Below are positions 2,268-46,899 of a stretch of 64,000 nt of DNA, in pieces. Within the stretch, counting starts at the first letter, position 1, and every line of letters starts with the position of its first letter. Location: assembly GCA_029953675.1 (NCBI GenBank), contig JAMWBK010000007.1, forward strand, positions 1,302,001-1,366,000, given 5' to 3'. Under the pieces are notes generated by a model. It did no database searches. It saw nothing but the letters and a program-made list of their open reading frames with translations, and was not told the DNA's origin. The stretch comes from Rhodosorus marinus CCMP1338 (lineage: Eukaryota; Plantae; Rhodophyta). Both the position numbers and the translations under genes were made by a program.

Positions 2268-2320
2268 GGTGGGGTGTGGTTGGTTGCTCCCAAGATATCT
2301 CAGCTTCCATAGTGAAATAC

Positions 2321-3212
2321 GAACGAATGGTTTAATCGGAGGCTGAAAAAAAAAATCCCGAGGGGAAAAAAAGACTAAGCGCGGCGAAGTACTCGCGCCT
2401 CCAACATCAAAGCGGCATTCATGCGCCACAGCAGGAAACTTAAGCGGGTAAACAACGATTGAAGACGGTCAGGGCGTTCGCGGAACAACTCCCGAAGCCA
2501 GCGAGAACCAACAGAGTCCATGAACCCAAAGCACTCAATGATCAGGGGTACCAAGCGATGTGCTAGTGCCGAAGCACGAACACCAGGGGAAGACAAAGCC
2601 CCCGCGTATTTGATCTCTTTGCGGCGTCTCATGCTGGCGGCGGCAGATCCACGGCGCTCCCCCGCAGCCGGGAGATAACGACTAGCCTGAGGGTTAGGAA
2701 CAGCAAGATCAACGTATGTGGTACGGCGGCTGTCGTCACAGGTGATCACCAGGTCGGCTACACGGCGTTCATCATTTTGAAAGTCCGCGACGGGTAAAGG
2801 TTTCTCACGTTCGATTTCCAGACCGGCTTGCCGGACTATAGGCCGAAGTTCCCGGTATAACAGGTTCAAGATCCGTGTGTGGCGGCGGGTTCGAGCACCT
2901 TTCACCGCCGGGCAACTAGCGAGCAGGTGGGCGCCAAAATCTGCGTTGTCTTCAGTCTGAGAGCAGAGAGGGCACGACGAACCCATCTCGTACGGCCAAG
3001 GGGGCTGATGTAAGCCGAGGTATAAGCGCAGTGAAGTACGCACTTCGAAATCCGACAGTGTGAGTGGCGGAAAGGCTGGTACGGTCATGAGCCACTGAGA
3101 GCTAATAACCCCTCCAAGACTACGTAGGCGGGCGCGAGCGCGAGAAGATGAGACCATCTGCGCGAGGAGTCGGCCATATGCAGCACGGTGCAAGTCCCAA
3201 GAAAGGATATTT
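2321..3212 (-). mobile_element. CRE-C 3' fragment (CCHC finger, REL endonuclease, 3' UTR, TTCG tail)
   Basis: ORF 2375-3265 is near-identical to 41977-42906 (CPLC...HLLASC, RTRRH, ADLVIT...YVD, PLIIECFG). Ends CCATTCGTTCG. Confidence 0.93.
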
Positions 3213-12425: not shown

Positions 12426-12514
12426 CCAGTTGTGTATCGAACGAATGGTTTGCTATCTTCAAGAGTTCCCATTGCTTTCGCAACAAAAACTCCCGTTCGC
12501 TCCCAGTTGTGTAT
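12426..12514 (-). mobile_element. CRE-C tail tip plus a 51-nt foreign hairpin-containing filler between 12-bp direct repeats
   Basis: CCAGTTGTGTAT at 12426-12437 and 12503-12514. The C tip is 12438-12451 and the filler is 12452-12502. Confidence 0.6.
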
Positions 12515-13458
12515 CGAATGAATGGTTTAATCGGAGGCTGAAAAAAAAACCCGAGGGGAAAAAAAGACTAAGCGCGGCGAAGTACTCGCGCCTCCAACAT
12601 CAAAGCGGCATTCATGCGCCACAGCAGGAAACTTAAGCGGGTAAACAACGATTGAAGACGGTCAGGGCGTTCGCGGAACAACTCCCGAAGCCAGCGAGAA
12701 CCAACAGAGTCCATGAACCCAAAGCACTCAATGATCAGGGGTACCAAGCGATGTGCTAGTGCCGAAGCACGAACACCAGGGGAAGACAAAGCCCCCACGT
12801 ATTTGATCTCTTTGCGGCGTCTCATGCTGGCGGCGGCAGATCCACGGCGCTCCCCCGCAGCCGGGAGATAACGACTAGCTTGAGGGTTAGGAACAGCAAG
12901 ATCAACGTATGTGGTACGGCGGCTGTCGTCACAGGTGATCACCAGGTCGGCTACACGGCGTTCATCATTTTGAAAGTCCGCGACGGGTAAAGGTTTCTCA
13001 CGTTCGATTTCCAGACCGGCTTGCCGGACTATAGGCCGAAGTTCCCGGTATAACAGGTTCAAGATCCGTGTGTGGCGGCGGGTTCGAGCACCTTTCACCG
13101 CCGGGCAACTAGCGAGCAGGTCGGCGCCAAAATCTGCGTTGTCTTCAGTCTGAGAGCAGAGAGGGCGCGACGAACCCATCTCGTACGGCCAAGGGGGCTG
13201 ATGTAAGCCGAGGTATAAGCGCAGTGAAGTACGCACTTCGAAATCCGACAGTGTGAGTGGCGGAAAGGCTACTACGGTCATGAGCCACTGAGAGCTAATA
13301 ACCCCTCCAAGACTACGTAGGCGGGCGCGAGCGCGAGAAGATGAGACCATCTGCGCGAGGAGTCGGCCATATGCAGCACGGTGCAAGTCCCAAGAAAGGA
13401 TATTTTGCAGCGCATCCGTGCGTGCTTGAGCTCGGCTCCCAGCGCGCTGGGAATCATC
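12515..13458 (-). mobile_element. CRE-C 3' fragment
   Basis: ORF 12568-13386 is near-identical to 41977-42906. Confidence 0.93.
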
Positions 13459-17370: not shown

Positions 17371-19089
17371 ATTTCGTCGTTGAGGCCGCATACGAAAGTC
17401 CTAACAAATTCTGCGGAATGGAAGGTTTCGGGACACCAAATACCTAGCTAATGACGACGAATCACAAATATATTGAAGATAAAGTCAGCCCATAAAATTA
17501 AATGATTGCATGTTCTATCAATTGAGATGTTTCTAGTCCAGTTTTTAAGAGCAAACGCGCGTATAGATTGAAGTTAGTCCACAAGCTGAAATGATTGGGG
17601 ATGCTGCATCAATTGGGAGCTGTTTTCTCAAATTTAATATCCATTAATTTGCACCTCTCGCTGCATAAACTCTTGTCGCACCTCGTTCCCTCGTTAGTTG
17701 ACAGCAAAATTTGATCTCCAAACAACCCCCCCCCCTTGGAAAGTCTTAAAGTAGGAAATTTCAAGCCTCCCCCCTTTCAGAAAGCCTCCCCCCTTTCAGA
17801 AACAATATTTTCTTTCACAAATCCATAGATGTATTCACAATTTATAAAAAAACTGAGAACTATCTAAACGAAATATTTGTGGATGTATGTCTTAATATTT
17901 TGATAATCAATATACACAAATATGAATTCATAAATTTGACATGTATGGCCTTATTAATTAAAAATACAAATCTCGAGTTAAAATCTGCTTTATTTCAAAC
18001 TTATAGCTCGTCAAGCCATCAAAGCAAGTCCATTTGCTACAGTATTGATTAACTACTGTTTTCTTCAGAATAACGTAACACCAATAGGAGAAAACCCAAC
18101 CGATGAGCAGTTGAAAAAAAAAGAAAAGGCAACCGCAACCCCCAAAAATTATAGTGCTTTGGAATGTCAAGGGTGAGTACAATATCATATTACGCTTATT
18201 TTATTTCCCGCTTTGAAAGCTCAATGTTTTGTTTGTTTTTAGATGGGAAGTGGAATAGTATCACTTTTTGCTTGTTTTCAGACTGGGAAGTTTTGGTTTT
18301 TTTCCCCTTTCGTTTTCCGAACCAGACAAGTCTTTAGGAATGGTTTTTTTCACAGAGAGTCCACGCTCGATGGATGAATGAATTGTCCGCACAAACGATG
18401 GCGTAGGTAAGAACCCGGTTTTTTTCGTTTTTTTGGCTAGGAGGAATTGTTAGTTTCAATCGAAATGCGGAGTTACGTATGAGTTGCGTAACGGCATAGC
18501 TTCGGTGTGGATGGAGAGCGTCACAGGCTACGTGCCTAGTCATATAGCTTTTTTGGGACGGTCGTGAACCTCCGTTTTCGTGTAATTTTTTGGGGGTTTT
18601 GTTTTTTCGTGCACACTTCTATCGGGATCAGTGAATATCGGGATCAGTAGAGCACCCATCCGATGTCAAGGGCGAGGATGTGGCCCCATCTTATATTTTG
18701 ATGTGTACAGGCAAACCTTGATTACAGATTGACGCCGCCTTTTTTTTTTTCACCTTGTACGGTTCACAAGCGCTTGCCGGTTGAAGAAGGCTACCTATGG
18801 CAATCACTTCCATGTTCAACGGAACTCGCGTCCGGTCGACTGAGTGAAAAGCGAGTGTTTGATGTATTTATTCAGGATTCAGGTATGTAGAACAAATCGA
18901 TAGCTTCCAGGTCGGGCGCTGGGAGTGTATATACTGCGTTCGTGTATGCTTGGGAGGTGGTTGGTAGGAGTGTGGGGTACAACCAGAGCGGAGTTGACTT
19001 TTGGCGTGTGGGCATTAACGTGAGGTGCAGGGGGGTAGCTGTTCAGTTGGTTGCTTGAGATGGTTGATCCTGCTTTTGTTTCGGGAAGC

Positions 19090-22000
19090 ATGAACCGACT
19101 CGCAGCGTTCGTGCTGTTGAGCATGGCCTTTTTGAAGCTTACCGCGGGTGCCACTACATGCGAGGCAGACCCGAAGAAGGGGTTGTTTGGTCACGAGGGT
19201 GCGTGTTTTGATCTTATCGATAGTGATGGTGTTAAGCAGGGGTCCGTGTGTACCTCCACCGTTGCTTTGGCAAGGGGAATGTGCATTCGCGCCAAGTACT
19301 CCGCCGAGAATACAGGTTCATCCGTATTAAAGTTGAGGGGAGGGCTTCACAAGAAGGACGAACGCGTCACCAAAAGATGGTCGAGGTATACCCGCAAGCG
19401 AACTGTGGCCACCATTAATTCACCTGATGTTTCCAGCGCCAGCCTTTATTTCTGCCCCAGCCACATCTCCGTGCTTGAGTTGCCGTGCTGCGGAGCAGAC
19501 CACCAATTCCTCGGATTTGCGGTGATTGCCGTGCCCGTATCTGAGCCAGATTCTGATCGAATTCAAGTTAAAGCTTATGTCGCTCCTCAGACGACCACTG
19601 CCGACGGTATCTGTAGCTCAAGAACGGGAGGAGGAGGCCGGGAAGAGTTTCTCTGTACTTTGAAAGTGACCTGCGATAGTTGCCCTAGTCGTGCTTGCAA
19701 CGACAACGGCACGTGCGTAAAAAAGATCGATTATGCGTGCGGTGACGCGGAGGTAAAACACGAATGTTCGTTCACTTTCATCAATGCGGGCCCTTCTGAT
19801 GAGGAGATACTTGGGATCACTTCTTTCCCAGGAAGCGTTTGCGGATCCCGATACAGGTACTTGTGGATGCCAATGCGACTCCAGCAGAGACGATGTATGC
19901 ATTGATGGGTTTGACGGCTGTGTAAGCCTTTCAGACTATGAATCAAGCTCATGTAATGATGCCGAGGTATGCCAGCAATAACTTTTGAGGAAGAACGAGG
20001 AAACGGCCCGGTCAAGTAGCAGCCCAGACTCATCGCTGTACCCAACCTCGTTTATTCGAATCCTTTTCCAACCAGTTCGGCGCCATCCATCCGGAAACAC
20101 GCGGGTGCGGATGCAGCTGCTCCTCTGCCCGTGGAAGCTGCTTAGACACGGCGAAAAACAATCGATGCCGGGACATCTTAGAGTACGGAGCAAACGTTTG
20201 TTCTGCTACAGAGGTAAGCATGACTTTTCACGGTCGAATAAGCAGTGCATACTCAAAAGTCTACGCACAAGGTTACTTACTCGAACCGTTGCAATCAGAT
20301 CGGCGTCATCGACTCGGCAACTGGCGAATGTGGATGCAGTTGCTCTATTGACGACGGAGGCTGTATAGACACAGGAAACAACAACGAATGCCGGAGTATC
20401 TCAGAGTATGGAGAAGATGCTTGTCCTGCTTTAGAGGTAGGCATGACCCGACCCTTCGCAGTCGAAACGCACCCAGACTCAAGTCCGTGCACAAGCTTAC
20501 TTGCTCGAACCGTTTTGCGATCAGATCGGCGTCATCGACTCCGCAACAGGCGAATGTGGATGCAGTTGCTCTATTGACGAGGGAGGCTGCATAGACACAG
20601 GAAACAACAACGAATGCCGGAGTATCTCAGAGTACGGAGAAGATGCTTGTCCTGCTTTAGAGGTAAGCATGACCCAACCCTGCACGGTCGAAACACAACA
20701 AAGACTTAAGTCCGTACATAAGCTCAACTACTCGGACTGTTCTCGGACCAGATTGGCGTCGTCGATTCGGCAACAGGCGAGTGTGGATGCAGTTGCTCTG
20801 TTGACGATGGAATCTGCATAGAAACAGCGAATAATCAATGCCGGAGTATCTCAGAGTACGGAGAAAATGTTTGTTCTGCGGTAGAGGTAGGAACCCTTCG
20901 CGGCCTAACAGCAACCAACACTCAAGTCTGTGCACAAGCTCACCTACTCGAGCCGTTCTCGGACCAGATCGGCGTCGTCGATTCCGCAACAGGCGAGTGT
21001 GGATGCAGTTGCTCTGTTGACGATGGAGGCTGCATAGACACAGCAAATAACCAATGCCGGAGTAGCTCAGAGTACGGAGAAAACGTTTGTTCTGCGGGAG
21101 AGGTAGGAACCCTTCGCGGTCTAACAGCAAACAAGAATCAAGTGTGTGCACAATCTCAATTACTCGAGCCGTTCTCGAACCAGATCGGCGTCGTCGATTC
21201 CGCAACAGGCGAGTGTGGATGCAGTTGCTCTGTTGACGATGGAGGCTGCATAGACAGAGCAAACAACAACGAATGCCGGAGCATCTCAGAGTACGGAGAA
21301 GATGCTTGTTCTGCTTTAGAGGTAGGCATGACCCAACTCTTCGCGGTCGAAACGCAACCCAGACTCAAGTCCGTGCACAAGCTTATTTGCTAGAACTGTT
21401 TTGCAATCAGAGCGGTGTCGTCGACTCGGCGAATGGCGAATGTGGATGCAGTTGCTCTGTTGACGACGGAGGCTGTATCGACACAGGAAACAACAACGAA
21501 TGTCGGAGTATCTCAGAGTACGGAGAAGATGCGTGTTCTGCTTTAGAGGTAGGCATAACCCAACCCTGCACGGTCGGAACGAAACCTAGACTCAAGTCCG
21601 TGCACAAGCTCACCTACTCGGACCGTTCTCGGACTAGATTGGCGTCGTCGATTCGGCAACAGGCGAGTGTGGATGCAGTTGCTCTGTTGACGATGGAGGC
21701 TGCGTAGATACAGTAAATACCCAATGCCGGAGTACCTTAGAGTACGGAGAAAATGTTTGTTCTGCGGTAGAGGTATGAACCCTTCGCGGTCTAACAGCGA
21801 CCAAGACTCAAGTGTGTGCACAAGCTCAATTACTCGAACCGTTCTCCATACAGATCGGCGTCGTTGATTCGGCAACAGGCGAGTGTGGATGCAGTTGCTC
21901 TGTTGACGATGGGGGCTGTATAGACATAGCAAACAACAACGAATGCCGGATTATCTCAGAGTACGGAGAAGATGCATGTCCTCGTTTAGAGGTAGGCATG

Positions 22001-25000
22001 ACCCAACTCTTCGCGGTCGAAACGCAACCCAGACTCAAGTCCGTGCACAAGCTTACTTGATCGAACTGTTTTGCAATCAGAGCGGCGTCGTCGACTCGGC
22101 AACAGGCGAATGTGGATGCAGTTGCTCTGTTGACGATGGAGGCTGTATCGACACAGGAAACAACAACGAATGTCGGAGTATCTCAGAGTACGGAGAAGAT
22201 GCTTGTTCTGCTTTAGAGGTAGGCATGACCCAACCCTGCACGGTTGAATCGCAGCCTAGACTCAAGTCCGTGCACACGCTCACCTACTCGGACCGTTCTC
22301 GGACCAGATTGGCGTCGTCGATTCGGCAACAGGCGAGTGTGGATGCAATTGCTCTGTTGATGATGGGGGCTGCATAGACACAGCAAGTACCCAATGCCGG
22401 AGTCTCTTAGAGTACGGAGAAGATGCTTGTTCTGCGGTAGAGGTAGGAACCTTTCGCGGTCTAATAGCCACCAAGACTCAAGTGTGTGCACAATCTCAAT
22501 TACTCGAGCCGTTATCCAACCAGATCAGCGTCGTCGACTCCGCAACAGGCGAGTGTGGATGCAGTTGCTCTGTTGACGATGGAGGCTGCATAGACACAGC
22601 AAATAACCAATGCCGGAGTACCTTAGAGTACGGAGAAAATGTTTGTTCTGCGGTAGAGGTAAGAACCCTTCGCGGTTTAACAGCGACCAAGACTCAAGTC
22701 TTTGCACAAGCTCAATTACTCGAACCGTTCTCCATACAGATCGGCGTCTTTGATTCGGCAACAGGCGAGTGTGGATGCAGTTGCTCTGTTGACGATGGGG
22801 GCTGTATAGACATAGCAAACAACAACGAATGCCGGATTATCTCAGAGTACGGAGAAGATGCATGTCCTCGTTTAGAGGTAGGCATGACCCAACTCTTCGC
22901 GGTCGAAACGCAACCCAGACTCAAGTCCGTGCACAAGCTTACTTGATCGAACTGTTTTGCAATCAGAGCGGCGTCGTCGACTCGGCAACAGGCGAATGTG
23001 GATGCAGTTGCTCTGTTGACGACGGAGGCTGTATCGACACAGGAAACAACAACGAATGTCGGAGTATCTCAGAGTACGGAGAAGATGCTTGTTCCACTTT
23101 AGAGGTAGGCATGACCCAACCCTGCAGGGTGGAAACGCAACCTAGACTCAAGTCCGCGCAGAAGCTCACCTACTCGGAACGTTCTCGGACCAGATTGGCG
23201 TCGTCGATTCGGCAACAGGCGAGTGTGGATGCGATTGCTCTGTTGATGATGGGGGCTGCATAGACATAGCAAGTACCCAATGCCGGAGTATCTCAGAATA
23301 CGGAGAAAAAGCTTGTTCTGCGGTAGAGGTAGGAACCTTTCGCGGTCTAATAGCCACCAAGACTCAAGTGTGTGCACAATCTCAATTGTTCGAGCCGTTA
23401 TCCAACCAGATCAGCGTCGTCGATTCCGCAACAGGCGAGTGTGGATGCAGTTGCTCTGTTGACGATGGAGGCTGCATAGACACAGCAAATAACCAATGCC
23501 GGAGTATCTCAGAGTACGGAGAAAATGTTTGTTCTGCAGTAGAGGTAAGAACCCTTCGCGGTTTAACAACGACCAAGACTCAAGTGTGTGCACAAGCTCA
23601 ATTACTCGAACCGTTCTCCATACAGATCGGCGTCGTTGATTCGGCAACAGGCGGGTGTGGATGCAGTTGCTCTGTTGACGATGGGGGCTGTATAGACATA
23701 GCAAACAACAACGAATGCCGGATTATCTCAGAGTATGGAGAAGATGCATGTCCTCGTTTAGAGGTAGGCATGACCCAACTCTTCGCGGTCGAAACGCAAC
23801 CCAGACTCAAGTCCGTGCACAAGCTTACTTGATCGAACTGTTTTGCAATCAGAGCGGCGTCGTCGACTCGGCAACAGGCGAATGTGGATGCAGTTGCTCT
23901 GTTGACGATGGAGGCTGTATCGACACAGGAAACAACAACGAATGTCGGAGTATCTCAGAGTACGGAGAAGATGCTTGTTCTGCTTTAGAGGTAGGCATGA
24001 CCCAACCCTGCACGGTTGAATCGCAGCCTAGACTCAAGTCCGTGCACACGCTCACCTACTCGGACCGTTTTCGGACCAGATTGGCGTCGTCGATTCGGCA
24101 ACAGGCGAGTGTGGATGCAATTGCTCTGTTGATGATGGGGGCTGCATAGACACAGCAAGTACCCAATGCCGGAGTATCTCAGAGTACGGAGAAAATGCTT
24201 GTTCTGCGGTAGAGGTAGGAACCTTTCGCGGTCTAATAGCCACCAAGACTCAAGTGTGTGCACAATCTCAATTACTCGAGCCGTTATCCAACCAGATCAG
24301 CGTCGTCGACTCCGCAACAGGCGAGTGTGGATGCAGTTGCTCTGTTGACGATGGAGGCTGCATAGACACAGCAAATAACCAATGCCGGAGTACATCAGAG
24401 TACGGAGAAAATGTTTGTTCTGCGGTAGAGGTAAGAACCCTTCGCGGTTTAACAGCGACCAAGACTCAAGTCTTTGCACAAGCTCAATTACTCGAACCGT
24501 TCTCCATACAGATCGGCGTTGTTGATTCGGCAACAGGCGAGTGTGGATGCAGTTGCTCTGTTGACGATGGGGGCTGTATAGACATAGCAAACAACAACGA
24601 ATGCCGGATTATCTCAGAGTACGGAGAAGATACATGTCCTCGTTTAGAGGTAGGCATGACCCAACTCTTCGCGGTCGAAACGCAACCCAGGCTCAAGTCC
24701 GTGCACAAGCTTACCTACTCGGGCGGTTCTTGGACCAGATTGGCGTCGTCGATTCGGCAACAGGCGAGTGTGGATGCAGTTGCTCTGTTGATGATGGAGG
24801 CTGTATCGACACTTCAAACAACAACGAATGCCGGAGTATTTCAGAGTACGGAGAAGATGCTTGTTCTGCTTTAGAGGTAAGCATGACCTAACCCTGCACG
24901 GTTGAATCGCAACCGAGACTCAAGTCCGTGCACATGCTCACCTACTTGGACCGTTTTCGGACCAGATTGGCGTCGTCGATTCGGCAACAGGCGAGTGTGG

Positions 25001-26667
25001 ATGCAATTGCTCTGTTGATGATGGGGGCTGCATAGACACAGCAAGTACCCAATGCCGGAGTATCTCAGAGTACGGAGAAAATGCTTGTTCTGCGGTAGAG
25101 GTAGGAACCCTTCGCGGTCTAATAGCCACCAAGAATGAAGTGTGTGCACAATCTCAATTACTCGAGCCGTTATCCAACCAGATGAGCGTCGTCGATTCCG
25201 CAACAGGCGAGTGTGGATGTAGTTGCTCTGTTGACGATGGAGGCTGCATAGACACAGCAAATAACCAATGCCGGAGTACCTCAGAGTACGGAGAAAATGT
25301 TTGTTCTGCGGTAGAGGTAAGCACTAAGCACTAGCCCTGAAAATCAGACCGATATCGTGCAAGTACTTTTCTGCATTCGGAGTGACCAACACATGGACTC
25401 TCTTTTCCTTTATTTGATCAGTTCGGGAGTGTGAATACGAGTACTGGCGCATGCAAATGTGTCTGTGATTCCACTGTCGCATGCTTTGACCGCAAAACAA
25501 ACAAGTGCAGGACGCTTGATCAATATGGAACGGAATTCTGCTCTCCCGGACAGGTATACCACGCACTCACTGAACTGTGCCCGTATGGACAGAATCTCTT
25601 ACTGCTCTCGGATTTGATACTTTCTCTTTATCAGGCCCCCTTTTTCACTAGTAGAACGGGCAGCTGCGCATGCTGCCACAATGCACCGGGCGACGACCAG
25701 TGCATCTTTAACGGAACTTGTATTGACAAGCATTCATTTGCTGTGCGTTTTTGCGATTCTGGTGCGGCTACGCAGGACGCCAGCGGACTTTGCACATGCG
25801 ATACCGATTGCTCAGTAGATCGAACCTTAGATTATAGGGATCACACAGGTTTTAGAACACTCCATACCCTCCTCGAATCCATGAAAGATAATCCTTAAAG
25901 CTGACCGCCAACTCTACGCTTTTAGGTGGGGGCTGCCCCGAGGAGTGATAGCACAGAACAATGTGAGCGCTGCGTGACGGACGATAGCACCTGTGCAAAC
26001 GTGGACGGTGGCATAGATAACGCAACGTGTGTCAGCGTTTTACTCGGCTTGCAATAGCTCTGAAGTGAGAAAAAGCACTGAGAAAAAATCTGTTGTTTTG
26101 TTCGGCTCGATTTTCCATACACCCTTCTCATTCATGTGTGTCCTAAACTTTCTGTTTGTGATGAGAGCAGAAACCGTACACTGATGATGAAAAATACAGC
26201 TGTTGTCCAGTCGGTGATGAGACCGCTGAACGCTGCTTAGTGGCCCCCGGGATTCGTCTTCATGACAAATGGTGGTTCCCAGCGCCCGAGCCACCCAGGT
26301 CAGGCGCGCCATCGGCGCCTGGGTTTGCACGCTTCCCCATCTAGTGCTTAAGTTCCTTTTCAAGCCATGCGTAGCGCTTTAGGCTATTCTAACAAAGCCA
26401 ATAAAAAGCAGTTTGAATGATATGGCGGTGAAAGCTTTCCGACCAGCACAAGCACGTCTTCGCGCTTGTGTAGCAGCTACACATCCAAGCGCCTTTGGAA
26501 TCAATACTCACCCTCATCTGACCTCTTCTGCCTCCTTCCTCTAATCATCTGTTGTTACTACTCGATAGGTATTAACTTCAAGCGAAGGTTTTTGCAACTG
26601 CGACCTTTGTACTAACAGCCAGTGCCTTGACAAGACTTATGGCACCTGTGAAGATCCCGACGAATGA
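19090..26667 (+). CDS. Secreted, multi-exon Cys-rich repeat protein (~30 exons; 23 near-identical 45/46-aa exons); 3' end possibly damaged
   Basis: Signal peptide MNRLAAFVLLSMAFLKLTAG. Exon 1 is 19090-19752, followed by phase-0 GT..AG introns. Exons 19832-19966 and 20076-20213, then 23 exons of 135 or 138 nt from 20299-20436 to 25182-25316 (IGVVDSATGECGCSCSVDDGGCIDT..NNECRSISEYGEDACSALE), separated by 81-89-nt introns. Later exons: 25422-25553, 25635-~25814, 25926-~26064, ~26171-, 26569-26667. The last few boundaries are tentative. Confidence 0.85.
20299..25316 (+). repeat. Tandem array of 23 exon+intron units (216-227 bp) with an 886-bp four-unit higher-order period
   Basis: Equivalent ORFs start at 21943, 22829, 23715 and 24601 (spacing 886). 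Introns are as conserved as exons. Confidence 0.95.
26302..26411 (+). mobile_element. Short CRE-A 3' end inside the 3' part of the Cys-repeat gene
   Basis: AGGCGCGCCATCGGCGCCTGGGTTTGCACGCTTCC...GCGTAGCGCTTTAGGCTAT. Confidence 0.82.
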
Positions 26668-26852
26668 AGCACTAACAATAACTGCGCTGTAAGTGTTTTC
26701 CTGCAGAAGAACTCTCATCTCGACAGCCACCATACGAAATACGGCAAGAATCCTCCCCTATTTTCCGCCCATCTCTGACAATTGTGGTGTTCTGATGGAT
26801 TCTAGCTTGTCAAGGAGGATGCGGAAGGTTTCTGCAAGTGTGCGAACCCATG

Positions 26853-29509
26853 GCGGTTGGCGACCTGAGCCGAGCGGCACGGGTCTTGGAGGGTCAGGTG
26901 CCTGTGCTCCCCTATGACGAGAGCCTCGACCAGACTGTGTCGGCGTTGTTCCCCTCGTCCGACGTGGACTTGCTGCCCGAATTCGAGGCATTTGTAGACC
27001 GTCCAGAGTTGGCCAGGTTCTGCATCGACCTGACGCTCCATGAGTCTGATCTGGAGGATTTGCTCCAGACCTCCCGTCGTGGACGCTGCCCTGGACCCTC
27101 TGGGCTACGAAACGGGATTACTGCAGGCCTTCAGCAAGCCTGGCCACAGCGCCCTGGTGAAGATCCTGAATACGCTGTTCCAGGGTGCAGGGGGTGCGTC
27201 TGCCCCTTGGGACCATCTGCGACGGGAACAGCTTTGCTTGCTAACGAAACCCGACCACGAGCCGGCACACCCGCGTCTCCGGCCGATCGGCATGGTTGAG
27301 AGTCTACGGAAGCTCGCCGGGAGGTGGCTATGCCAGCGCCTACGACATCGAGTCACTGCTCTTATGGCGCCATAGCAGGTAGGGTTGGGATTTTCTGGGG
27401 GTTGCGAACTGATCACTCATGCGATCGAGCTCGAGCGAGCCAGTAAGCCTGATTGGGGCGTTTTTTGGTAGTTGACTTCCGTAACGCGTTCAACAGCGTC
27501 TCGCGGACGCATGTACCCTGCGAATCACCTTTGGATGTGATTCGAAGGGTACTCCCGGAGACGTGGCCGTTCCTATCCGGTATTTACGGAGAGGGGAGCC
27601 TCCCTTACATGACAACGCAGTGTTCTTGCAGCACGTGCTTGCGTTCAGCAGGGTGATCCTTGTGTGCCTGTGCTTCACGACTGTACCTTCCAGCTCGTGC
27701 TCCAGCGACTGGCGGCTGAGGTTCCGGAGCTTCGCATCTGTGCCTACCATGACGACGTGACGTTGCTGGGCACCCCTGAGCACTTGGCTCGAGGATTGAT
27801 CTAGATCGAAGCAATCGCACGTGGAGTAAGTATAACCGTGGAACCCGGAAAATGTCGTTTTCTCGGCCCGCGTGAAGTTTCGAGGGGCTCCCTGCCACCT
27901 AGTCTCCGAGCCTCTGGTGAACGTGCGGGGCTCGAGCACGATGGCGTCGGTTTGGGGAGTGACAACTTTGTCCAAGACTCTTGCGAACGAGTTTTAGCAC
28001 GCCAAAAGCAGCTCACCGACGCCATTGAGCGCCTACCGGACAGCATGATCCAATCGGCTTGCCTGCTCTCCCACTTTTGTGCCGGTCCCCGACTGAATTA
28101 CTGGCTGCGAAGCCTTCCACCTCACTGGGGCTCGTGGATGGCAACCAAGGCGAACGAGGCGACGCTGAAGCACTGGGGAACGCTCCTGGATGAACCCCTG
28201 GATGTGGGAGCGGCTCCTGACGGGGACCTAATTCGTGGCCAGATTGCCCTACCTTTACGATTAGGCGGATTTGGAGTGGCCGACCGTGGACTTGCATGCT
28301 TGGCTGCGGCGGTCGCCTCCTGGGCTACCGCGCTTCGCACCTTGGTGAGTTTTCGGATGCGAAGTGCTTGCCTCTTGGCTAGAGTACTGACTAGAGAAGA
28401 CCCCGTGACCCTTCCACCACCGCTTTTGAGTATCTATGATGCTCTCCAACAGGCGTTCAGTAAGTGCGACGCCGTGCCGGACGAGAACCTATCTAGATTT
28501 CGCTCCTGGAAGGAGCTGTTATGGGGACGAACTGAGGTGCTCGAGGACTCTCCTATCGACAGAGTACTCGCCGACGAGAGGGAAGCTAGCCCCGGGTCAC
28601 CGGTTGCCGATTACCCGGGTCTGAGCCGATTGTGGAGCTCGCGCACTGATGTGATTCAACATAGCCTCACCTGGGGCCAACACAGTGCCGCTCACGCAAT
28701 CTTGCTCAACTCTCTCCTCACACCGCCTACCACCGCCGCTCGCCTCCGTGGAATGGCAGGCCATCTTTCACATCTGTGGTTAACGACCCTGCCGTCATCA
28801 CTCGGTCACCCTCTGCATGCCTTCCAGTTTCGCTGTGCCGCACGGATTTACCTGGGTTTGCAACAAGCTCCGTGGCACCCTAATCGGCCGTTTTTCTGTC
28901 AGGGATGCGAGAGTCGGATCGATGATTGTGGTTATCATTTCTTAGATTCATGCGGACTGTCGAGAGGTCTTCGTACAAGGCGTCACACTCGCTTCAGGTA
29001 CATTCTCAGCGAATGTTTGACTCAGGTAGGGCATACGGTTGAGGTGGAATCGGAACTTCTCAGATCGGTCTCGGATAGGGCACCGCCCCGCTGTATCGCA
29101 GATCTCCTCGTCTCCGATGCTGCCGCCAGACGCTCAGCATATGTTGAACTCGCGATTACATGCCCTGTGGCAAGCGCCCGTCTCACGGCTGCCACCTGCC
29201 GTCGGGGAGCAGCTGCTTCGGCCCTTCGCCGCGTGAAGGAACGACGGTATGCTGAGAGTATGGTCAGTCTGCCTCTCGCTGAGGGTCGCTCCCACCAGTT
29301 CCCGCCTTTCATTGTGGAAAGCTTTGGTCACGTGGAGAAGGTGGGTTTGGAGTGGTTGCGAAAATGTTTAACTGAACATCCTGTTTTTGCGGCGTCTAAG
29401 TGTCTCTCTGCGGCGATATTCGAGCAGCATGCTTGCCGAGGCGCGCCATCGGCGCCTGGGTTTGCACGCTTCCCTACCTAGTTCTTAGTTCCTTTTGACG
29501 GCTTGCGTA
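26853..29509 (+). mobile_element. 5'-truncated, decayed CRE-A' copy (RT to REL)
   Basis: DLSRAARVL, PRLRPIGMVE, FLVVDFRNAFN, AYHDD, ORF 27838-29481. Several frameshifts. Confidence 0.92.
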
Positions 29510-32170
29510 TGTCGATTTGCCGCTGCCAGTAGGGGGGTTGGAGTTGGTTTTCGGATTGCGATTGGAGCCGTGTTGCGGTCCGAGAGTGTTCTTAGTTGCA
29601 GGCGCAGCCTCTCGCTGTCTTTTTCCCCGCTTTTGGGGGTCTCTTGGTTGGTTCTCGGATATTCTCCCCCTTTGTGTGTGTTCGATCCAGAGCTTTCGGT
29701 CTGCGGCGCTGGATTGTGCGGGATATTTTGGTCGGGTTCCTTCGTGAAGCTCCTGTTCAATATACTCTTCTGTGATGGCCGGGGTTCCTCCGCGCTCCAC
29801 TCCTGAGGATCCGGAGATCCCGCGGGCGGAGGTGTCTACTGAGGGTGGACACACAGTGGCTCTTCGTGCAGGCCCTTTCTCCACGCAGGTGGAGTTACAG
29901 GGCGCTTCTGGTACGCAAGTGCGTGCCCTGCTCTCTGCTGTAACAAGCCTGATTACGGCCGCGGGCGATCGAGTTGTCATTCCTCAGCTGACCCAGAAGC
30001 TAGGGGGGCTGGAATCGGGTCTCCTCGCGAGGGAAAATTCCCGAGAATTTGAATTCCAGCCGGTTGGCCAAGCTGGCGGAAGACAGTCGACTTCCCCTGG
30101 TCAATCAACAACCTGTCCCGGGACAGGCGAGGGCGGCTCCGGGATCTGGAGGTGACAAAGGTGGTTCCGCAGCTGGTGCCTCTTCGGAGATGGGTGCAGA
30201 GCCGCCTAATCCTTCGAATGTTCCCTCAGCTGGAGCGGACTTTCCCGTCCTGGGCCAGCCCTCAGGTGTGCGACAGCTCCAAGCCAAGGCGGGGGCACGC
30301 GGTGGTCCCAAGGGGGCCCCGTATTTTACGTCTCAGTTTTGGGGAAGGGTACCACAGTTGCACGAACGGCGGCTATGTTAAGATTTTTGCCCTCTCGCGA
30401 GCAGCAGGGCGGATCTGCGGAGACTACTTTGCAATTCCTCTGGGTGCGCAACGTCCGGCCCCAGACTACAAGGGGCGAGGTCCCGTCCATGCGAGATTTT
30501 CGGGATACTTTTGCGGAGTCTTTGGGGTGTAGCCACGAAGACTTCATCTTCGCAAATTATGAGGGTCGCTATGTCCTCTTTGTGGTCACGTCGACCGCGG
30601 CCACGTACCTACAGGCCCTGCTGAGCAGTGGCCGGAGAGCGCCCGCTGGTTGCGTTCTCAACCCCAGGTCGTATTGCATTTCGGGTTCGACCGTTTTTCC
30701 GGCACTTTCCTCTCTCCCGGAGAAACAGAAAGGCTATCTGAGCACGAGACCAGTGTGAAATCTGCAGCCATCCATTGGCTTCGCATTCATCGCATGGAGC
30801 GGATACTTTTGGGCGTTTTGCATCGGGTCCACGCCATCTGCGCGCAGCCGCCTCTACCTTTTTTGACCGGGAGAGGCACCTTGTGCTGACCTCAAGTCAC
30901 AAGGCAGAGCTACGGCGTTTGGGAGTATTAGAGGGCTTCGCTCCAAGCACCACGTCCAGTGCGAGTGGCGAGGAAGGGGAGCTGGAGGTCGTGTCGGTCG
31001 AGAACGCCCCTATTACTTTGTTGAATCCCGGGGGAGCCATCCCGCGAGCCTCGCGGAGTGGCCGGTTGACCAGTTTGGTGAGGTTAGGAGGCAAGCGCGC
31101 GAGGACCGACTCCCCCGGGTTTAAGGGGGAGAAGCACGATTAGCTCTCCCGGCACGGCTGCGAGGTCGCAGCCAATGGACCTGCAGGCTTATGTCCTCAA
31201 GGAGGGCGGAGACTGGGGCATCTGGCGCACGCGCCTGCGGAGTTGGCTCCGGCGATGGATTTCTTTGGAAGGAGGCTCACTACCCCTCCGGGGGAGGATT
31301 CCGCCTCTTGTCCTCCCTCGAGGAGAGCTCTCCATGGCTGGGACAATTCTGGATTTTATTTTCCAGAGTTTGGCGCGTAATCAACGGGACGTCGCTATGT
31401 GGGAACTTTTGGGGGTCATGCCGCGCCTGATCCTGGCACCTATTCACACATCGGAGCGCAGATGGCGCGTCTGAGAACGACTGGCCATTTTCCTGAAGGG
31501 GGAATTTGAGGTGTTGCAGCAAAGCTACTTGGCCTCATCCGAGGCATCCGGCCGGAGGACTCGTGCTGGGACAGCCTCGCCTAAGACGACTCGAGTGCAG
31601 GAATTGGTGGCGGCTGCCGACCTGAGCCGAGCGGCACGGGTCTTGGAGGGTCAGGTGCCTGTACTCTCGTACGACGATAGCCTCGAACAGGCTGTGTCGG
31701 CGTTGTTCCCCTCGTCCGACGTGGACTTGCTGCCCGAATTCGAGGCATTTTTAGACCGTCCAGAGTTGGCCAGGTTCCGCATCGACCTGACGCTCCATGA
31801 GTCTGATCTGGAGGATTTGCTCCGGACCTCCCGTCGTGGACGCTGCCCTGGACCCTCTGGGCTACGAACGGAATTCCTGCAGGCCTTGAGCAAGCCTGGC
31901 CACAGCGCCCTGGTGAAGATCCTGAATACGCTGTCCCAGGGTGCAGGGGGTGTGTCTGCCCCTTGGGACCATCTGCGACGGGAACAGCTTTGCTTGTTAA
32001 CGAAACCCGACCACGAGCCGGCACACCCGCGTCTCCGGCCGATCGGCATGGTTGAGAGTCTACGGAGACTCGCCGGGAGGTGGCTATGCCAGCGCCTACC
32101 TCAGCGAGTCACCGCCTTTATGGAGCCTTGGCAGGTAGGGGTGGGATTCTCCGGGGGTTGCGAGCTAATC

Positions 32171-32233
32171 ACCTGCGGAAGGATCATTCACAAAAAGAGT
32201 TGAAGAGCCTGGGAGGGTTTTCTTCGACACATC
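32171..32233 (+). pseudogene. Retro-captured 18S rRNA 3' end plus probable ITS1 start
   Basis: ACCTGCGGAAGGATCATT (32171-32188) matches the conserved eukaryotic 18S 3' terminus exactly over 18 nt. It is followed by 45 nt not found in CRE-A. Confidence 0.82.
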
Positions 32234-32462
32234 CTTTGGTCACGTGGATAAGTCGGGTTTAGAGTGGTTGCGGAAATGTTTTGCTGAGCATCCTACTGAA
32301 TATTTGGCGCTCTTGAGGCGTTTAAGTGTCTCCCTTTGGCGATATTCCAGCGACATGCTTTCCGAGGCGCGCCAGCGGCGCCTGGGGTTGCATGCTTCCC
32401 TCCCTAGTTATTAGTTCATCTTCACGCCTTGCGTAGCGCTTCAGGCTATGCTAGTAAAGTCC
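32174..32462 (+). mobile_element. Chimeric insertion: pre-rRNA fragment plus 5'-truncated CRE-A, within 11-bp TSD AGCTAATCACC
   Basis: TSD at 32163-32173 and 32463-32473. The CRE-A part 32234-32462 is near-identical to 39185-39415. Confidence 0.88.
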
Positions 32463-34602
32463 AGCTAATCACCCATACGATCGAGCTCGAGCGAGCCAGT
32501 AGGTCTGATTGGGGCGTTTTGGTGGTTGACTTCCGCAACGCGTTCATCAACATCGTCTCGCGGACGCATGCTTTGGAGGTGATTCGCAGGGTTTTCCCGG
32601 AGGCGTGGCCGTTCCTATCCGGTATTTACGCACGGGGGAGCCTCCCTTACTTGACAACGCAGGGCTGTGTTTTTGCAGCACGTACTGGCGTTCAACAGGG
32701 TGATCCTTGTGGGACGGTACTTCACGCGTGTGCCTTGCAGTTCGTGCTCCCGCGTCTGGCGGCTGAGGTGCCGGAGCTTCGCATCTGTGCCTACCATGAC
32801 GACGTGACGCTGCTGGGCACTCCTGAGCACATGGCTCGGGGATTGACCCAGATAGAAGCACTCGTACGTGAAGTTGGTCTAACGGTGGAACCCGAAAAAC
32901 GTCGTTTTCTCGGCCCGCGTGAAGTTTGGAGGAGCTCCCTGCCACCTAGTCTTCGAGCCCTTGGTGAATATGCGGGGCTCGAGCACCATGGCGTCGGTTT
33001 TGGGAGTTGCAACTTTGTCCAAGACTCTTGCGAACGATTTTTAGCACGCCATAAGCAGCTCACCGACGCCATAAGGAGCTAACCGACGCCATTGAGCGCC
33101 TACCGGACAGGATGATCCAATCGGCTTGCCTGCTCTCCCGTTTTTGTGCCGGCGCCCGACTGAATTACTGGCTGCGAAGCCTTCCACCTCACTGGGGCTC
33201 GTGGATGGCAGCCAAGGCGGACGAGGCGACGCTGAAGCACTGGGGAACGCTCCTGGATGAACCCCTAGATTTGGAAGCGGCTCCTGACAGGGACCTAATT
33301 CGTGGCCAGATTGCCCTACCTTCACGATTAGGCGGATTTGGAGTGGCCGACTGGGGACTCGTATGCTCGGCAGCAGCGGTCGCCTCCTGGGCTACCGCGC
33401 TTCGCACCTTGGTGAGTTTTCGGATGCGAAGTGCTTGCCTTTTGGCTAGAGCATTGACTAGCGCAGACACCGTGACCCTTCCGCCACCGCTTTTGAGTAT
33501 CTATGATGCTCTCCAGCAGGCGTTCAGTAAGTGTAACACCGTGCCGGACGAGAGCCGATCTAGATTTCGCTCCTGGAAGGAGCTGTTATGGGGACGAACT
33601 GAGGTGCTCGAGGACTCTCCCATCGACAGAGTACTCGCCGGCGAGGGGGAAGTTAGCCCCGGGTCACCGGTTGCCGATTACCCGGGTCTGAGCCTATTGT
33701 GGAGCTCGCGCACTGATGTGATTCAACATAGCCTCACCTGGGGCCAACACAGTGCCGCTCACGCAATCTTGCTCAACTCTCCACTCACACCGCCTACCAC
33801 CGCCGCTCGCCTCCGCGGTATGGCAGGCCATCTATCACATTTGTGGTTAACGACCCTGCCGTCATCACTGGGTCACCGCCTGGATGCCTTCCAGTTTCGC
33901 TGTGCCGCACAGATTTACCTGGGTTTGCCACAAGCTCCGTGGCACCCTAATCGGCCGTCTTTCTGTCAGGGATGTGAGAGTCGGATCGATGCTTGTGGAT
34001 ACCATTTCTTAGGTTTATGCGGACTGTTGAGAGGTCTTCGTACGAGGCGTCACACTCGCTTCAAGTACATTCTCAGCGAATGTCTGACTCGGGTAGGGCA
34101 TACGGTTGAGGTGGAATCGGAATAACCCAGATCGGTCTCGGATAGGGCACCGCCCCGCTGTATCGCAGATCTCCTCGTCTCCGATGCTGCCGCCAGACGC
34201 TCAGCATATGTTGACCTCGCGATTACATGCCCTGTGGCAAGCGCCCATCTCACGGCTGCCGCCCGCCGCCGAGGAACAGCTGCTTCGGCCCTTTCCCGCG
34301 TGAAGTAACGACGGTATGCGGAGGGTATGGGCAGCCTGCCTCGCGCTGAGGGTCGCTCCCACCGGTTCCAGCCTTTCATTGTGGAGAGCTTTGGTCACGT
34401 GGAGAAGATGGGTTTGGAGTGGTTGCGAAAATGTTTAACTGAACATCCTGTTTTTGCGGCGTCTAAGTGTCTCTATGTGGCGATATTCGAGCAGCATGCT
34501 TGCCGAGGCGCGCCATCGGCGCCTGGGTTTGCACGCTTCCCTATCTAGTTCTTAGTTCTTTTTGACGGTTTGCGTAGCTTTTTAAGCTATGCTAATAAAG
34601 CC

Positions 34603-37600
34603 GTCGAGGATTGGGGTATTGTTTCTTTTTCGGTCGCGAGCGTGTTCGTTTACGGGAAGCGCTTCCTCTGGTACGCCTTCCCCTCGATTTTCCGCGGGGC
34701 ATCGTTTGCATTTGCAACTACTTCTGTCTTCCGGTCTGTCTTCCGGGTGGGTGTGTTGCGGGGCCCTTCCTATTTGGGTTGGGTTTGGTCGATTATTCTC
34801 TCGGTGTGGTATCATATTGGTGGTGCAACGTTTCCTTTGGGGATTCCCTCAGGATGGTAGGGATATCTCCGCGCTCGACGGAGCCTCCTCCCAAGGAGGC
34901 ACTGCCAGGTGGGGGACTCCGTGTTCGCCTCAGCTGCGGCACCTTTTCTTCCGAGGTTGACTTGGAAGGCGCTTCTGGCACCCAGGCGCGTGCACTTATC
35001 TCCGCTGTCACCAGCCTGATCACGGCTGCGAGTGAACGTGGAGTGCTCCCTCAGCTCACCCAGAAGCTAGGTGAGCTGGAATCGGGATTGCTGGCCAGGT
35101 CAAATTCAAATTCGGACGAGAATTTGAATTGCACCAGAGTGGCAGCGTTGGCCGAAGGCAGTCAACATCAGGTCAATCAACATGAACCTGTCCCGGGACA
35201 GGCGAGGGCGGTTGCTTCTGCGCGGGACAGTACGACGTTGGGGAGCGGCAGGCCGGGCCAAAACGCGCTTCAGCGCTCGGGGACTCGAGGCAATGGTGGT
35301 GGTGACTGTGCGGCAACCGGTGTGGAGGAGACTGCAGCTGTGGACTTCCCTCTCTTGGACCAGCCCTCAGGTGGTCACCAGCTCCCGGCTACTTCGGGGG
35401 CACATGGTGGCCGCAAGGGGGGCGCTTCGTACGCATCAGTCTTGCGGAAGGGCACCACTGCCACACGTACGTCGGCTATGCTCCGTTTCATACCATCTCG
35501 CGAGCCTCAGGATGGACCTGTGGAGACCACTCTCCAATTTCTGTGGGTGCGAAATGTCCGGCCCCAGACTACACGAGGACAGGTTCCGTCTATGCGAGAC
35601 TTCCGGGACACTTTTGCGGAATCGTTAGGGTGCAGCCGGGGTGATTTCTTCTTCGCAAACTATGAGGGCCGCGATGTGCTGTTTTTGGTCTCCGCAACCG
35701 CCGCCAAGTACCTGGAGGCCTTGCTGGCGAAGCCTACCGAGCAGTGGCCTGAGAGCGCCCGGTGGCTGCGCTGCAACCCGCAGGTGGTTTTGCACTTCGA
35801 TTTTGACCGTTTCTCGGGCAATTTCCTGTCTCCGGGAGAAACGGCAGGGCTCTCTGAGCATGAGAGCAGCGTGAAGGCGGCAGCGATCCATTGGCTACGG
35901 ATTCAGCGCCTTGAGAGGATCTTGTTGGAGCGGTTCCGGTCGGGCCCTCGTCACCTGCGCATGGCGGTTTCCAGTTTCTTCGATCTGGAGAGGCGACTTG
36001 TGCTGACTTCGCGCTACAAGACAGAGCTGCAGCGGGTGGGGATTTTGGAGGGCTCTGCTTCCAGCACTACTTCCAGCGAGAGTGGTGAGGCAGGGGAGCA
36101 GACTGAGGGCATGGCGGTGCAGGACGCCCAGGTTACTTTGCTGAAGCCCGCGGGATCCGTTCCGCGAGCCTCGCGGAGTGGGCGGCTCACGACTTTGGTG
36201 CGGATAGGAGGTAAGAGAGCGAGGACCGACTCCCCCGGGTCTAAGGGGAGAAGCACGATTAGCGCTCCAGGCACGGCTGCGAGGTCGCAGCCTATGGATC
36301 TACAGTCTTATGTCCTGAAGGAGGGCGGAGACTGGGGCATTTGGCGTACGCGTTTTCGGAGTTGGCTCCGGCGGTGGATTTCTTTGGAAGGAGGCTCGCT
36401 TCCCCTCCGTGGGGGCATTCCCCCAGTCGTCCTTCCTCGTGGAGACCTTCTAGTTGCTGGAACGATTCTCGATTTCATCTTCACGAGCCTGGCTCGCAAC
36501 ATTCGGGACACAGTCATTTGGGTTTTTCTGGGGGTCATGCCGCGCCTGATTCTGGCCCCCATTCACACATCGGAGCGCAGATGGCGAGTACGAGACCGAC
36601 TGGCCCTGTTCTTGAAGGGAGACTTCGAAGTACTACAGCGCAGCTATTTGGCGTCGTCAGCACCATCCGCCCGTCGGACTCGGCATGGCACAGTGTCGCC
36701 CGTGCCAGCTCGAGTACAGAAATTGGTAGCAGTGGGCGATTTAAGTCGAGCGGCGCGGGTTTTGGAGGGCCAGGCGCCTGTCCTCCCCTACGATGATAGT
36801 CTCGCCCAGACGGTGTCGTCTTTGTTCCCTGAGTCCGACGTGGATTTGTCCCCTGAATTCGAGGTATTCTTGGACCGTCCGGAGTTGGCCAGGTTTCGCA
36901 TCGATCTGACGCTCAGTAAGTCTGACCTGGAGGATTTGCTTCGTACCTCGCGTCGGGGACGCTGTCCCGGACCCTCCGGACTAAGAACAGAGCTATTGCA
37001 GGCCCTGAGCCAGCCTGGCAAGAGCGCGCTTCTGAGGATCCTTAACAAGTTGTTCCAGGGCGTATCGGGTGCGTCCGCGCCATGGGAACATCTCCGGCAG
37101 GCACAGCTTTGCTTGCTCACGAAACCTGACCACCAGCCGGACCACCCGCGTCTCCGGCCGATCGGGATGGTGGAGAGCCTACGGAAGTTAGCCGGGAGGT
37201 GGCTATGCCAGCGCCTTCGCCAGCGCGTCACAGCTTTTATGGCGCCCTTGCAAGTAGGGGTGGGATTCTCTGGGGGTTGTGAACTGATCACCCATGGGAT
37301 CGAGCTAGAACGCGCCAGTAGGCCGGAGTGGGGAGTCTTGGTGGTTGATTTCCGGAACGCATTCAACAGCGTGTCGCGGACGCATGCGCTAGAGGTGCTC
37401 CGACGTGTGTTTCCGGAGGCGTGGCCGTTTCTATCGGGTATTTACGGAGGGGAGAGCCTCCCCTACTTGACACCGGAGGGCACTGTTTTTCAAGCACATA
37501 CTGGCGTCCAACAAGGCGACCCTTGCGGACCTCTTCTTCATGCCTGTGCCCTACAGCTCGTACTTTTACGTCTTTCGACTGAGGTCTCGGATCTTCGAAT

Positions 37601-39426: not shown

Positions 39427-39519
39427 CTAGGGACACATTTATAAATTCGCGTGTCTGCCGGTTTTGGACTTTTTGAGGAATTGAAAATGAGTGAATGAGT
39501 TTATTTTCATAATTGTTTT

Positions 39520-39835
39520 TATTGAATGAATGATTTTTGTTTTTTATTGAACGAATTTTTGGTTGATCCGAGGATGAAAGAAAACCGGAGGGGAAAAAAA
39601 AGACGAAGCGCGGCAAAGATGGGGGCCCCTCCGACATCGAACCAGCGTTCATACGCCACAGTAAGAAACTTGCACAGATAAGCAACGACGACAGATGGTC
39701 AGGGCGGTTCACGGAACAATTCCCGAAGCCAACGAGAACCAACTGAATCCATAAACGCAAAGCACTCAAGCACCAGAGGTACCAGACGACGAGCTAGAGC
39801 CGATCCCTGGGGAAGACAAAGCCGGCGCATATTTC
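39520..39835 (-). mobile_element. Divergent CRE-C' 3' fragment, head-to-head with the next element
   Basis: Similar to but diverged from 2321-2610 (ICASFLLWRMNAGSMSEG...). Confidence 0.82.
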
Positions 39836-42800: not shown

Positions 42801-42960
42801 CGAACGCCCTGACCGTCTTCAATCGTTGTTTACCCGCTTAAGTTTCCTGCTGTGGCGCATGAATGCCGCTTTGATGTTGGAGGCGCGAGTACTTCGCCGC
42901 GCTTAGTCTTTTTTTCCCCTCGGGGTTTTTTTTTCAGCCTCCGATTAAACCATTCGTTCG
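39836..42960 (+). mobile_element. 5'-truncated CRE-C with RT and REL; one frameshift near 41960
   Basis: ORF 39839-42196 (AIRPIGLVEVVRKL, SVDFTNAFN, GVQQGDP, AYHDD, LPLRLGGLG) and ORF 41977-42906 (CCHC, REL). Tail CCATTCGTTCG. Confidence 0.93.
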
Positions 42961-43137
42961 AGATAGCGATAGAAGTAGTGTTACGCTGCAGTAGGCAGCT
43001 ATCCAGTTTGGGGTTACGTTAGTCTGGGGTTTACTAGCATAGCCTGAAGCGCTACGCAAGGCGTGAAAAGGAACTAAGAACTATGGAGGGAAGCGTGCAA
43101 ACCCAGGCGCAGACGTTAGTCTGCGGTGGGGTAAAAG
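42961..43137. mobile_element. CRE-B 3' UTR and tail (+), short CRE-A 3' end (-), and more 16-nt repeat
   Basis: GTTACGCTGCAGTAGGCAGC...GGGGTTACGTTAGTCTGGGGT to 43030; reverse CRE-A end 43031-43110; GTTAGTCTGCGG and GTTAGTCTGGGG after it. Confidence 0.82.
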
Positions 43138-46697: not shown

Positions 46698-46882
46698 AAA
46701 AATAAAAACGATAGGAGACTTAAGAGAAAATAAAAACGATGGGAGAGTCTAAACGATGGGAGATTGTGGGAAAAATAAAAACGACCGAAGACGTTGGGAA
46801 ATATAAAAACGATAGGAGACTGGAGAAAAAATAAAAACGATGGGAGACGTTGGGAATAATAAAAACGACGGGAGACGTTGGT
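46698..46882. repeat. ~28-bp minisatellite, ~7 copies
   Basis: Unit AAAATAAAAACGATGGGAGACGTTGGG and variants. Confidence 0.85.
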
Positions 46883-46899
46883 AAAATGACTGCACCACG

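Follow-up and report, generated by a model that had tools for sequence, protein, structure and literature searches.

Cassette duplication probably built an intron-rich gene for a predicted secreted six-cysteine repeat protein in Rhodosorus marinus

We analysed a window of 64,000 nucleotides from the unicellular red alga Rhodosorus marinus CCMP1338 (contig JAMWBK010000007.1, positions 1,302,001 to 1,366,000) that contains a long tandem array of alternating exons and introns. The array probably belongs to a spliced coding gene of a secreted protein family specific to Rhodosorus, and would have grown by duplication of whole exon-plus-intron cassettes. As predicted, the gene lies on the forward strand from 19090 to approximately 26057 and comprises about 29 exons and 28 introns, with the array occupying its middle. 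A first-pass annotation had placed the gene at 20299-25316; this range is correct for the array, but the full gene, its damaged 3′ end and its membership of a multigene family had all been missed.

Using Tandem Repeats Finder, we identified one array at 20052-25323 with a period of 227, 23.8 copies and a score of 5823. Anchoring on the conserved motif TGTGGATG resolved 23 units at intervals of 226/227 or 216 bp, which follow the series 227, 227, 216, 216. These correspond to 23 exons at 20299-25316 on the forward strand, all in phase 0 and differing in length by one codon only (12 of 138 nt and 11 of 135 nt). The acceptor is CAG at 22 exons and TAG at one, and the donor reads GAG/GTA (exon/intron) at every exon. 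Each exon encodes one six-cysteine module of 46 or 45 aa with the pattern CxCxC-x6-C-x8/9-C-x10-C and the consensus IGVVDSATGECGCSCSVDDGGCIDTANN(N)ECRSISEYGEDACSALE, which bears out the earlier description of 23 symmetric phase-0 exons with one such module apiece. All 22 internal introns are GT-AG introns, of 81 nt (10), 89 nt (11) or 88 nt (1), and their length tracks the preceding exon: 81 nt after 135-nt exons and 88/89 nt after 138-nt exons. The introns of 85-89 nt reported previously are thus 88/89 nt long within the array, whereas the 85-nt one precedes its first exon. Chance cannot produce this pattern.

When the 22 complete units, each an exon with the intron that follows it, were compared pairwise for identity, and exon 23 was typed by its exon sequence alone, four types emerged:

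Type A (138-nt exon, 89-nt intron): units 1, 5, 8, 12, 16 and 20
Type B (138-nt exon, 89-nt intron): units 2, 6, 9, 13, 17 and 21
Type C (135-nt exon, 81-nt intron): units 3, 10, 14, 18 and 22
Type D (135-nt exon, 81-nt intron): units 4, 7, 11, 15, 19 and 23

Identity is 82-90% between A and B, 86-92% between C and D, and 73-82% between A/B and C/D, and reaches 99-100% within a type among the younger units. Units 8-23 constitute four complete A-B-C-D blocks of 886 bp each, and shifting the sequence by 886 bp from unit 8 onward gives 96.3% identity. The blocks, all on the forward strand, are:

20299-21183: H1, units 1-4 (A, B, C, D), the oldest copy, with ~87-93% identity to younger units of the same type
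21184-21853: H2, units 5-7 (A, B, D), incomplete, lacking the type C unit
21854-22739: H3, units 8-11, 886 bp
22740-23625: H4, units 12-15, 886 bp
23626-24511: H5, units 16-19, 886 bp
24512-25316: H6, units 20-23, ending with exon 23 and holding the mosaic junction of units 20/21

The super-repeat had been counted at about four copies; this is accurate for the young copies in units 8-23, but there are six in all, the two older ones being units 1-4 and units 5-7. As in a higher-order tandem repeat, identity is higher between blocks than between the monomers inside one. Pairwise identity among H3-H6 ranges from 93.4 to 99.0%, and H3 is closest to H5 (99.0%) despite H4 lying between them (H3 versus H4, 96.9%). 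H2 contains the sole exon with a TAG acceptor, exon 7, which is followed by an intron with an in-frame TGA. The four intron types align end to end and differ by one 8-nt indel. As the introns are homologous across all units, and also to the 85-nt intron upstream of the array, the duplicated unit would always have been an exon plus an intron. Intron 20 (24650-24741) is a mosaic, type A in its 5′ part and type B over its last ~25 nt, and exon 21 begins with an Ile codon typical of type C exons, the rest being type B; together they appear to mark a conversion or crossover junction inside the intron. The homologous introns, and same-type copies that are more alike than the units within a copy, support the earlier proposal of growth by tandem duplication of cassettes with a higher-order period. 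Its suggestion of unequal crossing-over likewise agrees with the hierarchy of repeats, the non-monotonic similarity of the blocks and the mosaic units, from which we infer unequal exchange and gene conversion as the mechanism.

Near-identical repeats of this kind might have been inflated or mis-joined during assembly, given that the public genome was built from Nanopore reads (PMC10250338) and that just 8 of 805 positions distinguish H3 from H5. We consider this very improbable. The other copies differ by 3-7%, and H1 and H2 by more, differences that an assembler would not invent; the array is shorter than the 6-kb size-selected reads (PMC10250338); and a like array is present at a second locus, NDN08_004874, described below. 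With an array of just 5 kb and differences of several percent between most copies, gross mis-assembly is unlikely.

We propose the following history for the array. One module exon and its short intron would have been duplicated repeatedly by unequal crossing-over, and the resulting cassettes would have diverged into types A, B, C and D. Amplification of the four-unit, 886-bp block would then have raised it to about six copies, among which gene conversion would later have acted. Splicing of the exons would yield a continuous frame of ~1,500 codons, encoding a very acidic, beads-on-a-string extracellular protein; one predicted exon-junction peptide is ...ACSALE-IGVVDSATGECGCSCSVDDGGCIDTANNQCR.

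Sequence diversity among the units distinguishes exons from introns. Over 22 aligned complete units, nucleotide diversity was 0.078, 0.091 and 0.166 at codon positions 1, 2 and 3, respectively, and 0.183-0.197 in introns. Variable columns numbered 14/15/28 by codon position (14/15/29 when all 23 exons were included), compared with 50 of 80 internal intron columns; positions 1+2 differed from introns (p=6e-5) and from position 3 (p=0.002). The introns had been called nearly as conserved as the exons. The copies are indeed young and their introns similar, but the introns are ~1.7x more diverse. Within the four youngest blocks alone, variation was 3.8%, 3.8% and 9.9% at positions 1-3 and 11.6% in introns, with the intron-20 mosaic accounting for about a dozen of the intron differences. 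Within unit types, pairwise pN/pS was 0.29. At least 70 exon substitutions have introduced zero stops and zero frameshifts and have left 138 of 138 Cys codons in place, for which the neutral expectation is ~2e-4 for retention of all Cys and ~0.03 for no stop. Codon-position bias together with the retention of cysteines and frame thus points to constrained coding exons and unconstrained introns; that is, the exons would have evolved as translated sequence in the predicted frame and the introns neutrally.

Two open reading frames (ORFs) overlapping the array, an antisense ORF of 201 aa (20657-21262) and a read-through ORF of 206 aa (24254-24874), were rejected as genes and classed as by-products of the repeat.

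We identified only three close relatives of the gene among 5.8 billion proteins (E 2e-119 to 3e-93), all of them R. marinus hypothetical proteins: NDN08_002780, NDN08_005008 and NDN08_004884 (P0001-P0003). A family profile run exhaustively with HMMER against 1.84 billion representative proteins returned 19 matches, and every match whose source was checked came from R. marinus, either the genome or the MMETSP transcriptomes. A module profile search of the 5.8-billion-protein collection gave no match, and scans of metagenomes and metatranscriptomes with a conserved exon 26-mer and with N-terminal-domain peptide patterns recovered no relatives. On this evidence, the genes represent a predicted secreted family found only in Rhodosorus. 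Members would share a common plan, consisting of a signal peptide and a ~200-aa beta-sandwich domain encoded by exon 1, followed by ~45-aa six-cysteine modules, each on its own phase-0 exon.

The exon maps of P0001-P0003 show an exon 1 of 663-720 nt with a shared end point (654-720 nt when the more distant P0019 is included), after which one six-cysteine module follows per phase-0 exon, although a few paralogue exons carry two or three. Annotated introns in the family range from 63 to 340 nt, most being 72-90 nt long; their donors are GTA/GTG and their acceptors CAG/TAG, and the array introns conform to the family donor consensus AG/GTA[AG]G. All family modules align on a common six-cysteine pattern, and the array module is nearest to the exon-2 type. 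The window gene has the same signal peptide, N-terminal domain, string of modules on separate phase-0 exons and short introns, and alignments of the N-terminal region revealed shared motifs (LKLRGG, RYTRKR, CP..I, CCG and F.GFA) and conserved Cys. It differs from P0001-P0003, which contain ~3-12 different modules, each present once, in that its middle modules are replaced by 23 copies of a single CxCxC type. Moreover, P0001-P0003 and P0019 have database products, whereas the window gene has none and is damaged at its 3′ end.

Comparison with the paralogues defined the parts of the gene flanking the array, all on the forward strand:

19090-19752: exon 1, 663 nt, phase 0, with the start codon, the signal peptide MNRLAAFVLLSMAFLKLTAG and the ~200-aa Cys-containing N-terminal domain
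19832-19966: exon 2, 135 nt, an old, diverged CxCxC six-cysteine module whose counterpart is exon 2 of P0002, with 41% identity to the first array module
20076-20213: exon 3, 138 nt, part of the cassette series and one of its older members, with 52% identity to the first array module
25422-25553: first exon 3′ of the array, 132 nt, phase 0, a diverged CxCxC module (FGSVNTSTGACKCVC...)
25635-25848: exon with a CxCC module and a truncated module, matching part of the 408-nt exon 6 of P0001
25926-26057: probable last coding exon, with an 11-nt deletion relative to both paralogues in DNA alignments with loci L001 and L002, causing a frameshift into a premature TAG at 26055-26057; deletion and TAG fall within 26030-26060
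26171 to ~26300: relic module exon 3′ of the stop, with two Cys lost
26569-26667: relic terminal module (VLTSSEGFCNCDLC...EDPDE, then TGA), resembling exon 9 of P0001

Exon 1 is equal in length to exon 1 of P0001, has an identical end point and shares 71% protein identity with it; its dN/dS against the closest paralogue (L001) is 0.42. The Tandem Repeats Finder call already takes in exon 3 and part of the intron upstream of it. In the exon at 25635, the final module has lost its second half relative to the paralogues; the donor is either GTAGAT at 25815, in phase 0, or GTTTTA at 25849, in phase 1. The TGA of the relic terminal module is probably the end of the ancestral gene.

Most of the 19 family matches are stand-alone N-terminal domains of ~190-300 aa. 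R. marinus has ~15 such versions, several of which are clustered on contig JAMWBK010000012.1. Module strings were found in two of the 19, P0016 and P0019 (NDN08_004874, locus L004). On the same contig, NDN08_004874 contains an array at L004 6729-8240, annotated as spliced, in which 126/117-nt exons alternate with 72/84-nt introns. It forms a 399-bp two-unit super-repeat present four times, with introns as similar between blocks as exons, and is an array independent of that in the window. Downstream of it are tiny exons between near-identical 82-nt introns, which look like another degenerate cassette series. A polyadenylated 2.2-kb cDNA contig from another Rhodosorus strain (L007, 1-2179, JGI sample 3300017118) encodes P0016 as one uninterrupted ORF. 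It aligns to L004 exon by exon, with the 74-nt and 72-nt introns absent, showing that module exons in the family are spliced at module borders. This cDNA has one module pair where the CCMP1338 genome has four, which hints that copy number differs between strains or paralogues.

Several observations weigh against a functional gene. The 3′ end is damaged, with the 11-nt frameshifting deletion and degenerate downstream modules, and sequence of a retroelement begins ~800 bp past it, reverse-transcriptase-like sequence starting near 26860. We found no product of the gene in the 5.8-billion-protein collection, and it thus appears unannotated in the public assembly; nor was a transcript found in that collection or in the metagenome and metatranscriptome scans. 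The signal of selection may predate the latest amplification and is not proof of present use. In addition, the N-terminal fold has no informative match in the PDB, and an AlphaFold2 model of a single module, built from 28 aligned modules, is unreliable (mean pLDDT 51), so that the functional assignment draws on composition and architecture only.

The C-terminal part of the ancestral gene appears to be decaying, and this keeps alive the reading that the locus is a silent or dying pseudogene, in which the array expands and homogenizes like a satellite and the coding constraint was inherited from a functional ancestor. The missing product and transcript, the deletion and the relic modules beyond the stop would all fit this reading, as would the reverse-transcriptase elements that flank the gene in transposon-rich surroundings; part of the variation among young copies, moreover, consists of conversion tracts and not new mutations. 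We nonetheless regard it as rather unlikely. Exon 1, 23 of 23 array exons, 46 of 46 array splice sites and every Cys codon of the array are intact, and a complete predicted reading frame of ~1,500 codons, stop included, remains despite the 3′ damage. Furthermore, even the four youngest blocks vary less at positions 1+2 than at position 3.

The first-pass annotation also raised the possibility of a generator of isoforms, in which combinatorial skipping of phase-0 cassettes and occasional retention of 81-nt introns would yield a set of secreted proteins that serve recognition or adhesion. Skipping would be frame-neutral, as all array exons are in phase 0 and a multiple of 3 nt long. The 81-nt introns had been described as in frame and free of stops. 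This holds for nine of the ten, which if retained would escape nonsense-mediated decay, and the 84-nt introns of the NDN08_004874 array are open too; the intron after exon 7, however, starts GTA TGA, and frame 2 is also open in nine of ten. Variable sites in the 81-nt introns are distributed 9/5/10 by position, at a neutral level and without a third-position excess. All ten derive from two ancestral introns, which reduces the effective sample to two. A retained copy would add 27 mostly non-acidic residues and one unpaired Cys, and the 72-nt introns of the NDN08_004874 array, also a multiple of three, carry in-frame stops. We found no Rfam or RNA-structure signal that could steer exon choice, and the sole family cDNA seen, L007, has consecutive modules and no intron sequence. 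These data speak against coding retention of the 81-nt introns, and we judge a combinatorial isoform system to be quite improbable.

The introns repeat along with the exons and are of a size typical of small nucleolar RNAs (snoRNAs), which could suggest that the introns are the functional part, as an intron-hosted array of small RNAs, the exons serving merely as host transcript. This idea is scarcely credible. No Rfam match was obtained at E<=1 in 19000-27000, folding-stability z-scores (+0.2, -1.7, +1.6 and -2.1) showed no consistent excess, and the introns are as diverse as third codon positions, whereas coding constraint is seen in the exons.

We next consider the protein that the gene, read as a spliced coding gene, would encode. 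The array product has a pI of 4.05 and contains 13% Cys, 20% Asp+Glu, 13% Gly and 13% Ser; the whole predicted product has 12-13% Cys and a pI of ~4. AlphaFold2 modelled the N-terminal domain as all-beta (mean pLDDT 83.2, pTM 0.79), and it is predicted with good confidence to be a beta-sandwich. A Foldseek search of the PDB with this model returned generic beta-sandwich matches only (E>=0.027, TM<=0.3), the best having E=0.027 and TM 0.27. Pfam gave no match for the N-terminal domain, the modules or the family members, even at E<=10, and a module profile found nothing below E=0.9 among PDB sequences. UniRef labels one family member ‘Secreted protein’; taken with the signal peptide, this supports the earlier suggestion that the product is secreted, as we also infer. 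UniRef further applies the automatic label ‘EGF-like domain-containing’ to one family member. We rejected an EGF-like identity: there is no Pfam EGF match at E<=10, and a Cys spacing with an initial CxCxC is not the EGF pattern. By analogy with secreted module arrays such as sp185, CREMP and Dumpy (PMC12723725), the product would be an extended, disulfide-stabilized and possibly Ca2+-binding component of the alga's mucilaginous surface. As a disulfide-bonded protein, it most likely has a structural or adhesive role at the cell surface or in the mucilage.

A bolder extension holds that the family consists of fast-evolving, copy-number-variable surface proteins whose arrays vary between strains, with exon skipping tuning the length or adhesiveness of the coat and cassette duplication acting as a working mechanism of intron gain. 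We consider this unlikely. If true, the family would be an algal counterpart of variable adhesins or mucins, and cassette duplication would be a mechanism of intron gain in an otherwise intron-poor lineage.

That repeat proteins grow when symmetric exons are duplicated in tandem, also as super-repeats, is textbook knowledge. In the kringle IV-2 region of human LPA, exon-plus-intron cassettes are tandemly amplified and copy-variable, with introns nearly as identical as exons; in nebulin, multi-module super-repeats are the unit of duplication. The domains and organisms are unrelated to those studied here, where the cassettes measure 216-227 bp with 81-89-nt introns, but by analogy with LPA and nebulin the copy number of the window array is expected to change by unequal exchange. 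The hierarchy, in which monomers are 73-90% alike and multi-monomer blocks 93-99%, is also that of alpha-satellite higher-order repeats. Alpha-satellite is, however, a centromeric satellite, whereas the window array is protein-coding (as a predicted spliced gene) and under apparent purifying selection.

The Balbiani ring 3 (BR3) gene of Chironomus, to which the array had been likened, is reportedly split by many introns. Its product, sp185, is a secreted structural protein of tandem CxCxC modules with 16.8% Cys (PMC12723725). The two systems, one from an insect and the other from a red alga, share CxCxC motifs, a large number of modules and a structural product that is secreted (predicted here). 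Modules of sp185 vary in length and have two disulfides each; those of Rhodosorus are regular six-cysteine modules of 45/46 aa, and neither the HMMER search of 1.84 billion proteins nor the module profile search detected sequence homology to sp185 modules. The likeness is therefore one of analogy only. EGF-like and other small six-cysteine extracellular modules are likewise rich in disulfides and follow one another in structural proteins that are secreted, CREMP and DPY (Dumpy; PMC12723725) being examples.

What is new here is the instance: an intron-rich, unannotated gene, an undescribed Rhodosorus-specific family and two independent arrays within that family. The R. marinus genome has 8,392 genes and 24,821 introns, or ~3 introns per gene (PMC10250338), compared with ~28 in this one gene, suggesting that internal duplication can supply new introns. 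The locus provides a clean record of a repeat protein built, along with most of its introns, by cassette duplication, with three layers of history readable in the single units, the four-unit block and the conversion mosaics. The family would also contribute a new (predicted) beta-sandwich domain and a new six-cysteine acidic module, and its members are candidates for components of the cell wall or mucilage.

Elsewhere, the window is rich in retroelements (27000-43000; also 2310-3212, 12509-13458 and 42095-42960), with reverse-transcriptase-domain ORFs at 34611-39365 and 39839-42196. Several transposon fragments match copies elsewhere in R. marinus (assembly GCA_029953675.1), including around the paralogue genes, at 98-100% identity, which marks the window as R. 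marinus nuclear DNA and implies recent transposition. A tRNA scan of the window found none. An intronless ORF of 1307 aa at 52666-56589 on the forward strand combines an evident signal peptide with a GGxGG region rich in Gly. Neither a Pfam match nor a recorded product of identical sequence was found for it, and it may encode another uncharacterized secreted protein. Finally, two small, unrelated tandem repeats lie in non-coding-looking sequence, a 28/56-nt unit in ~5 copies at 46751-46886 and a 79-nt unit in ~2 copies at 44847-44999.

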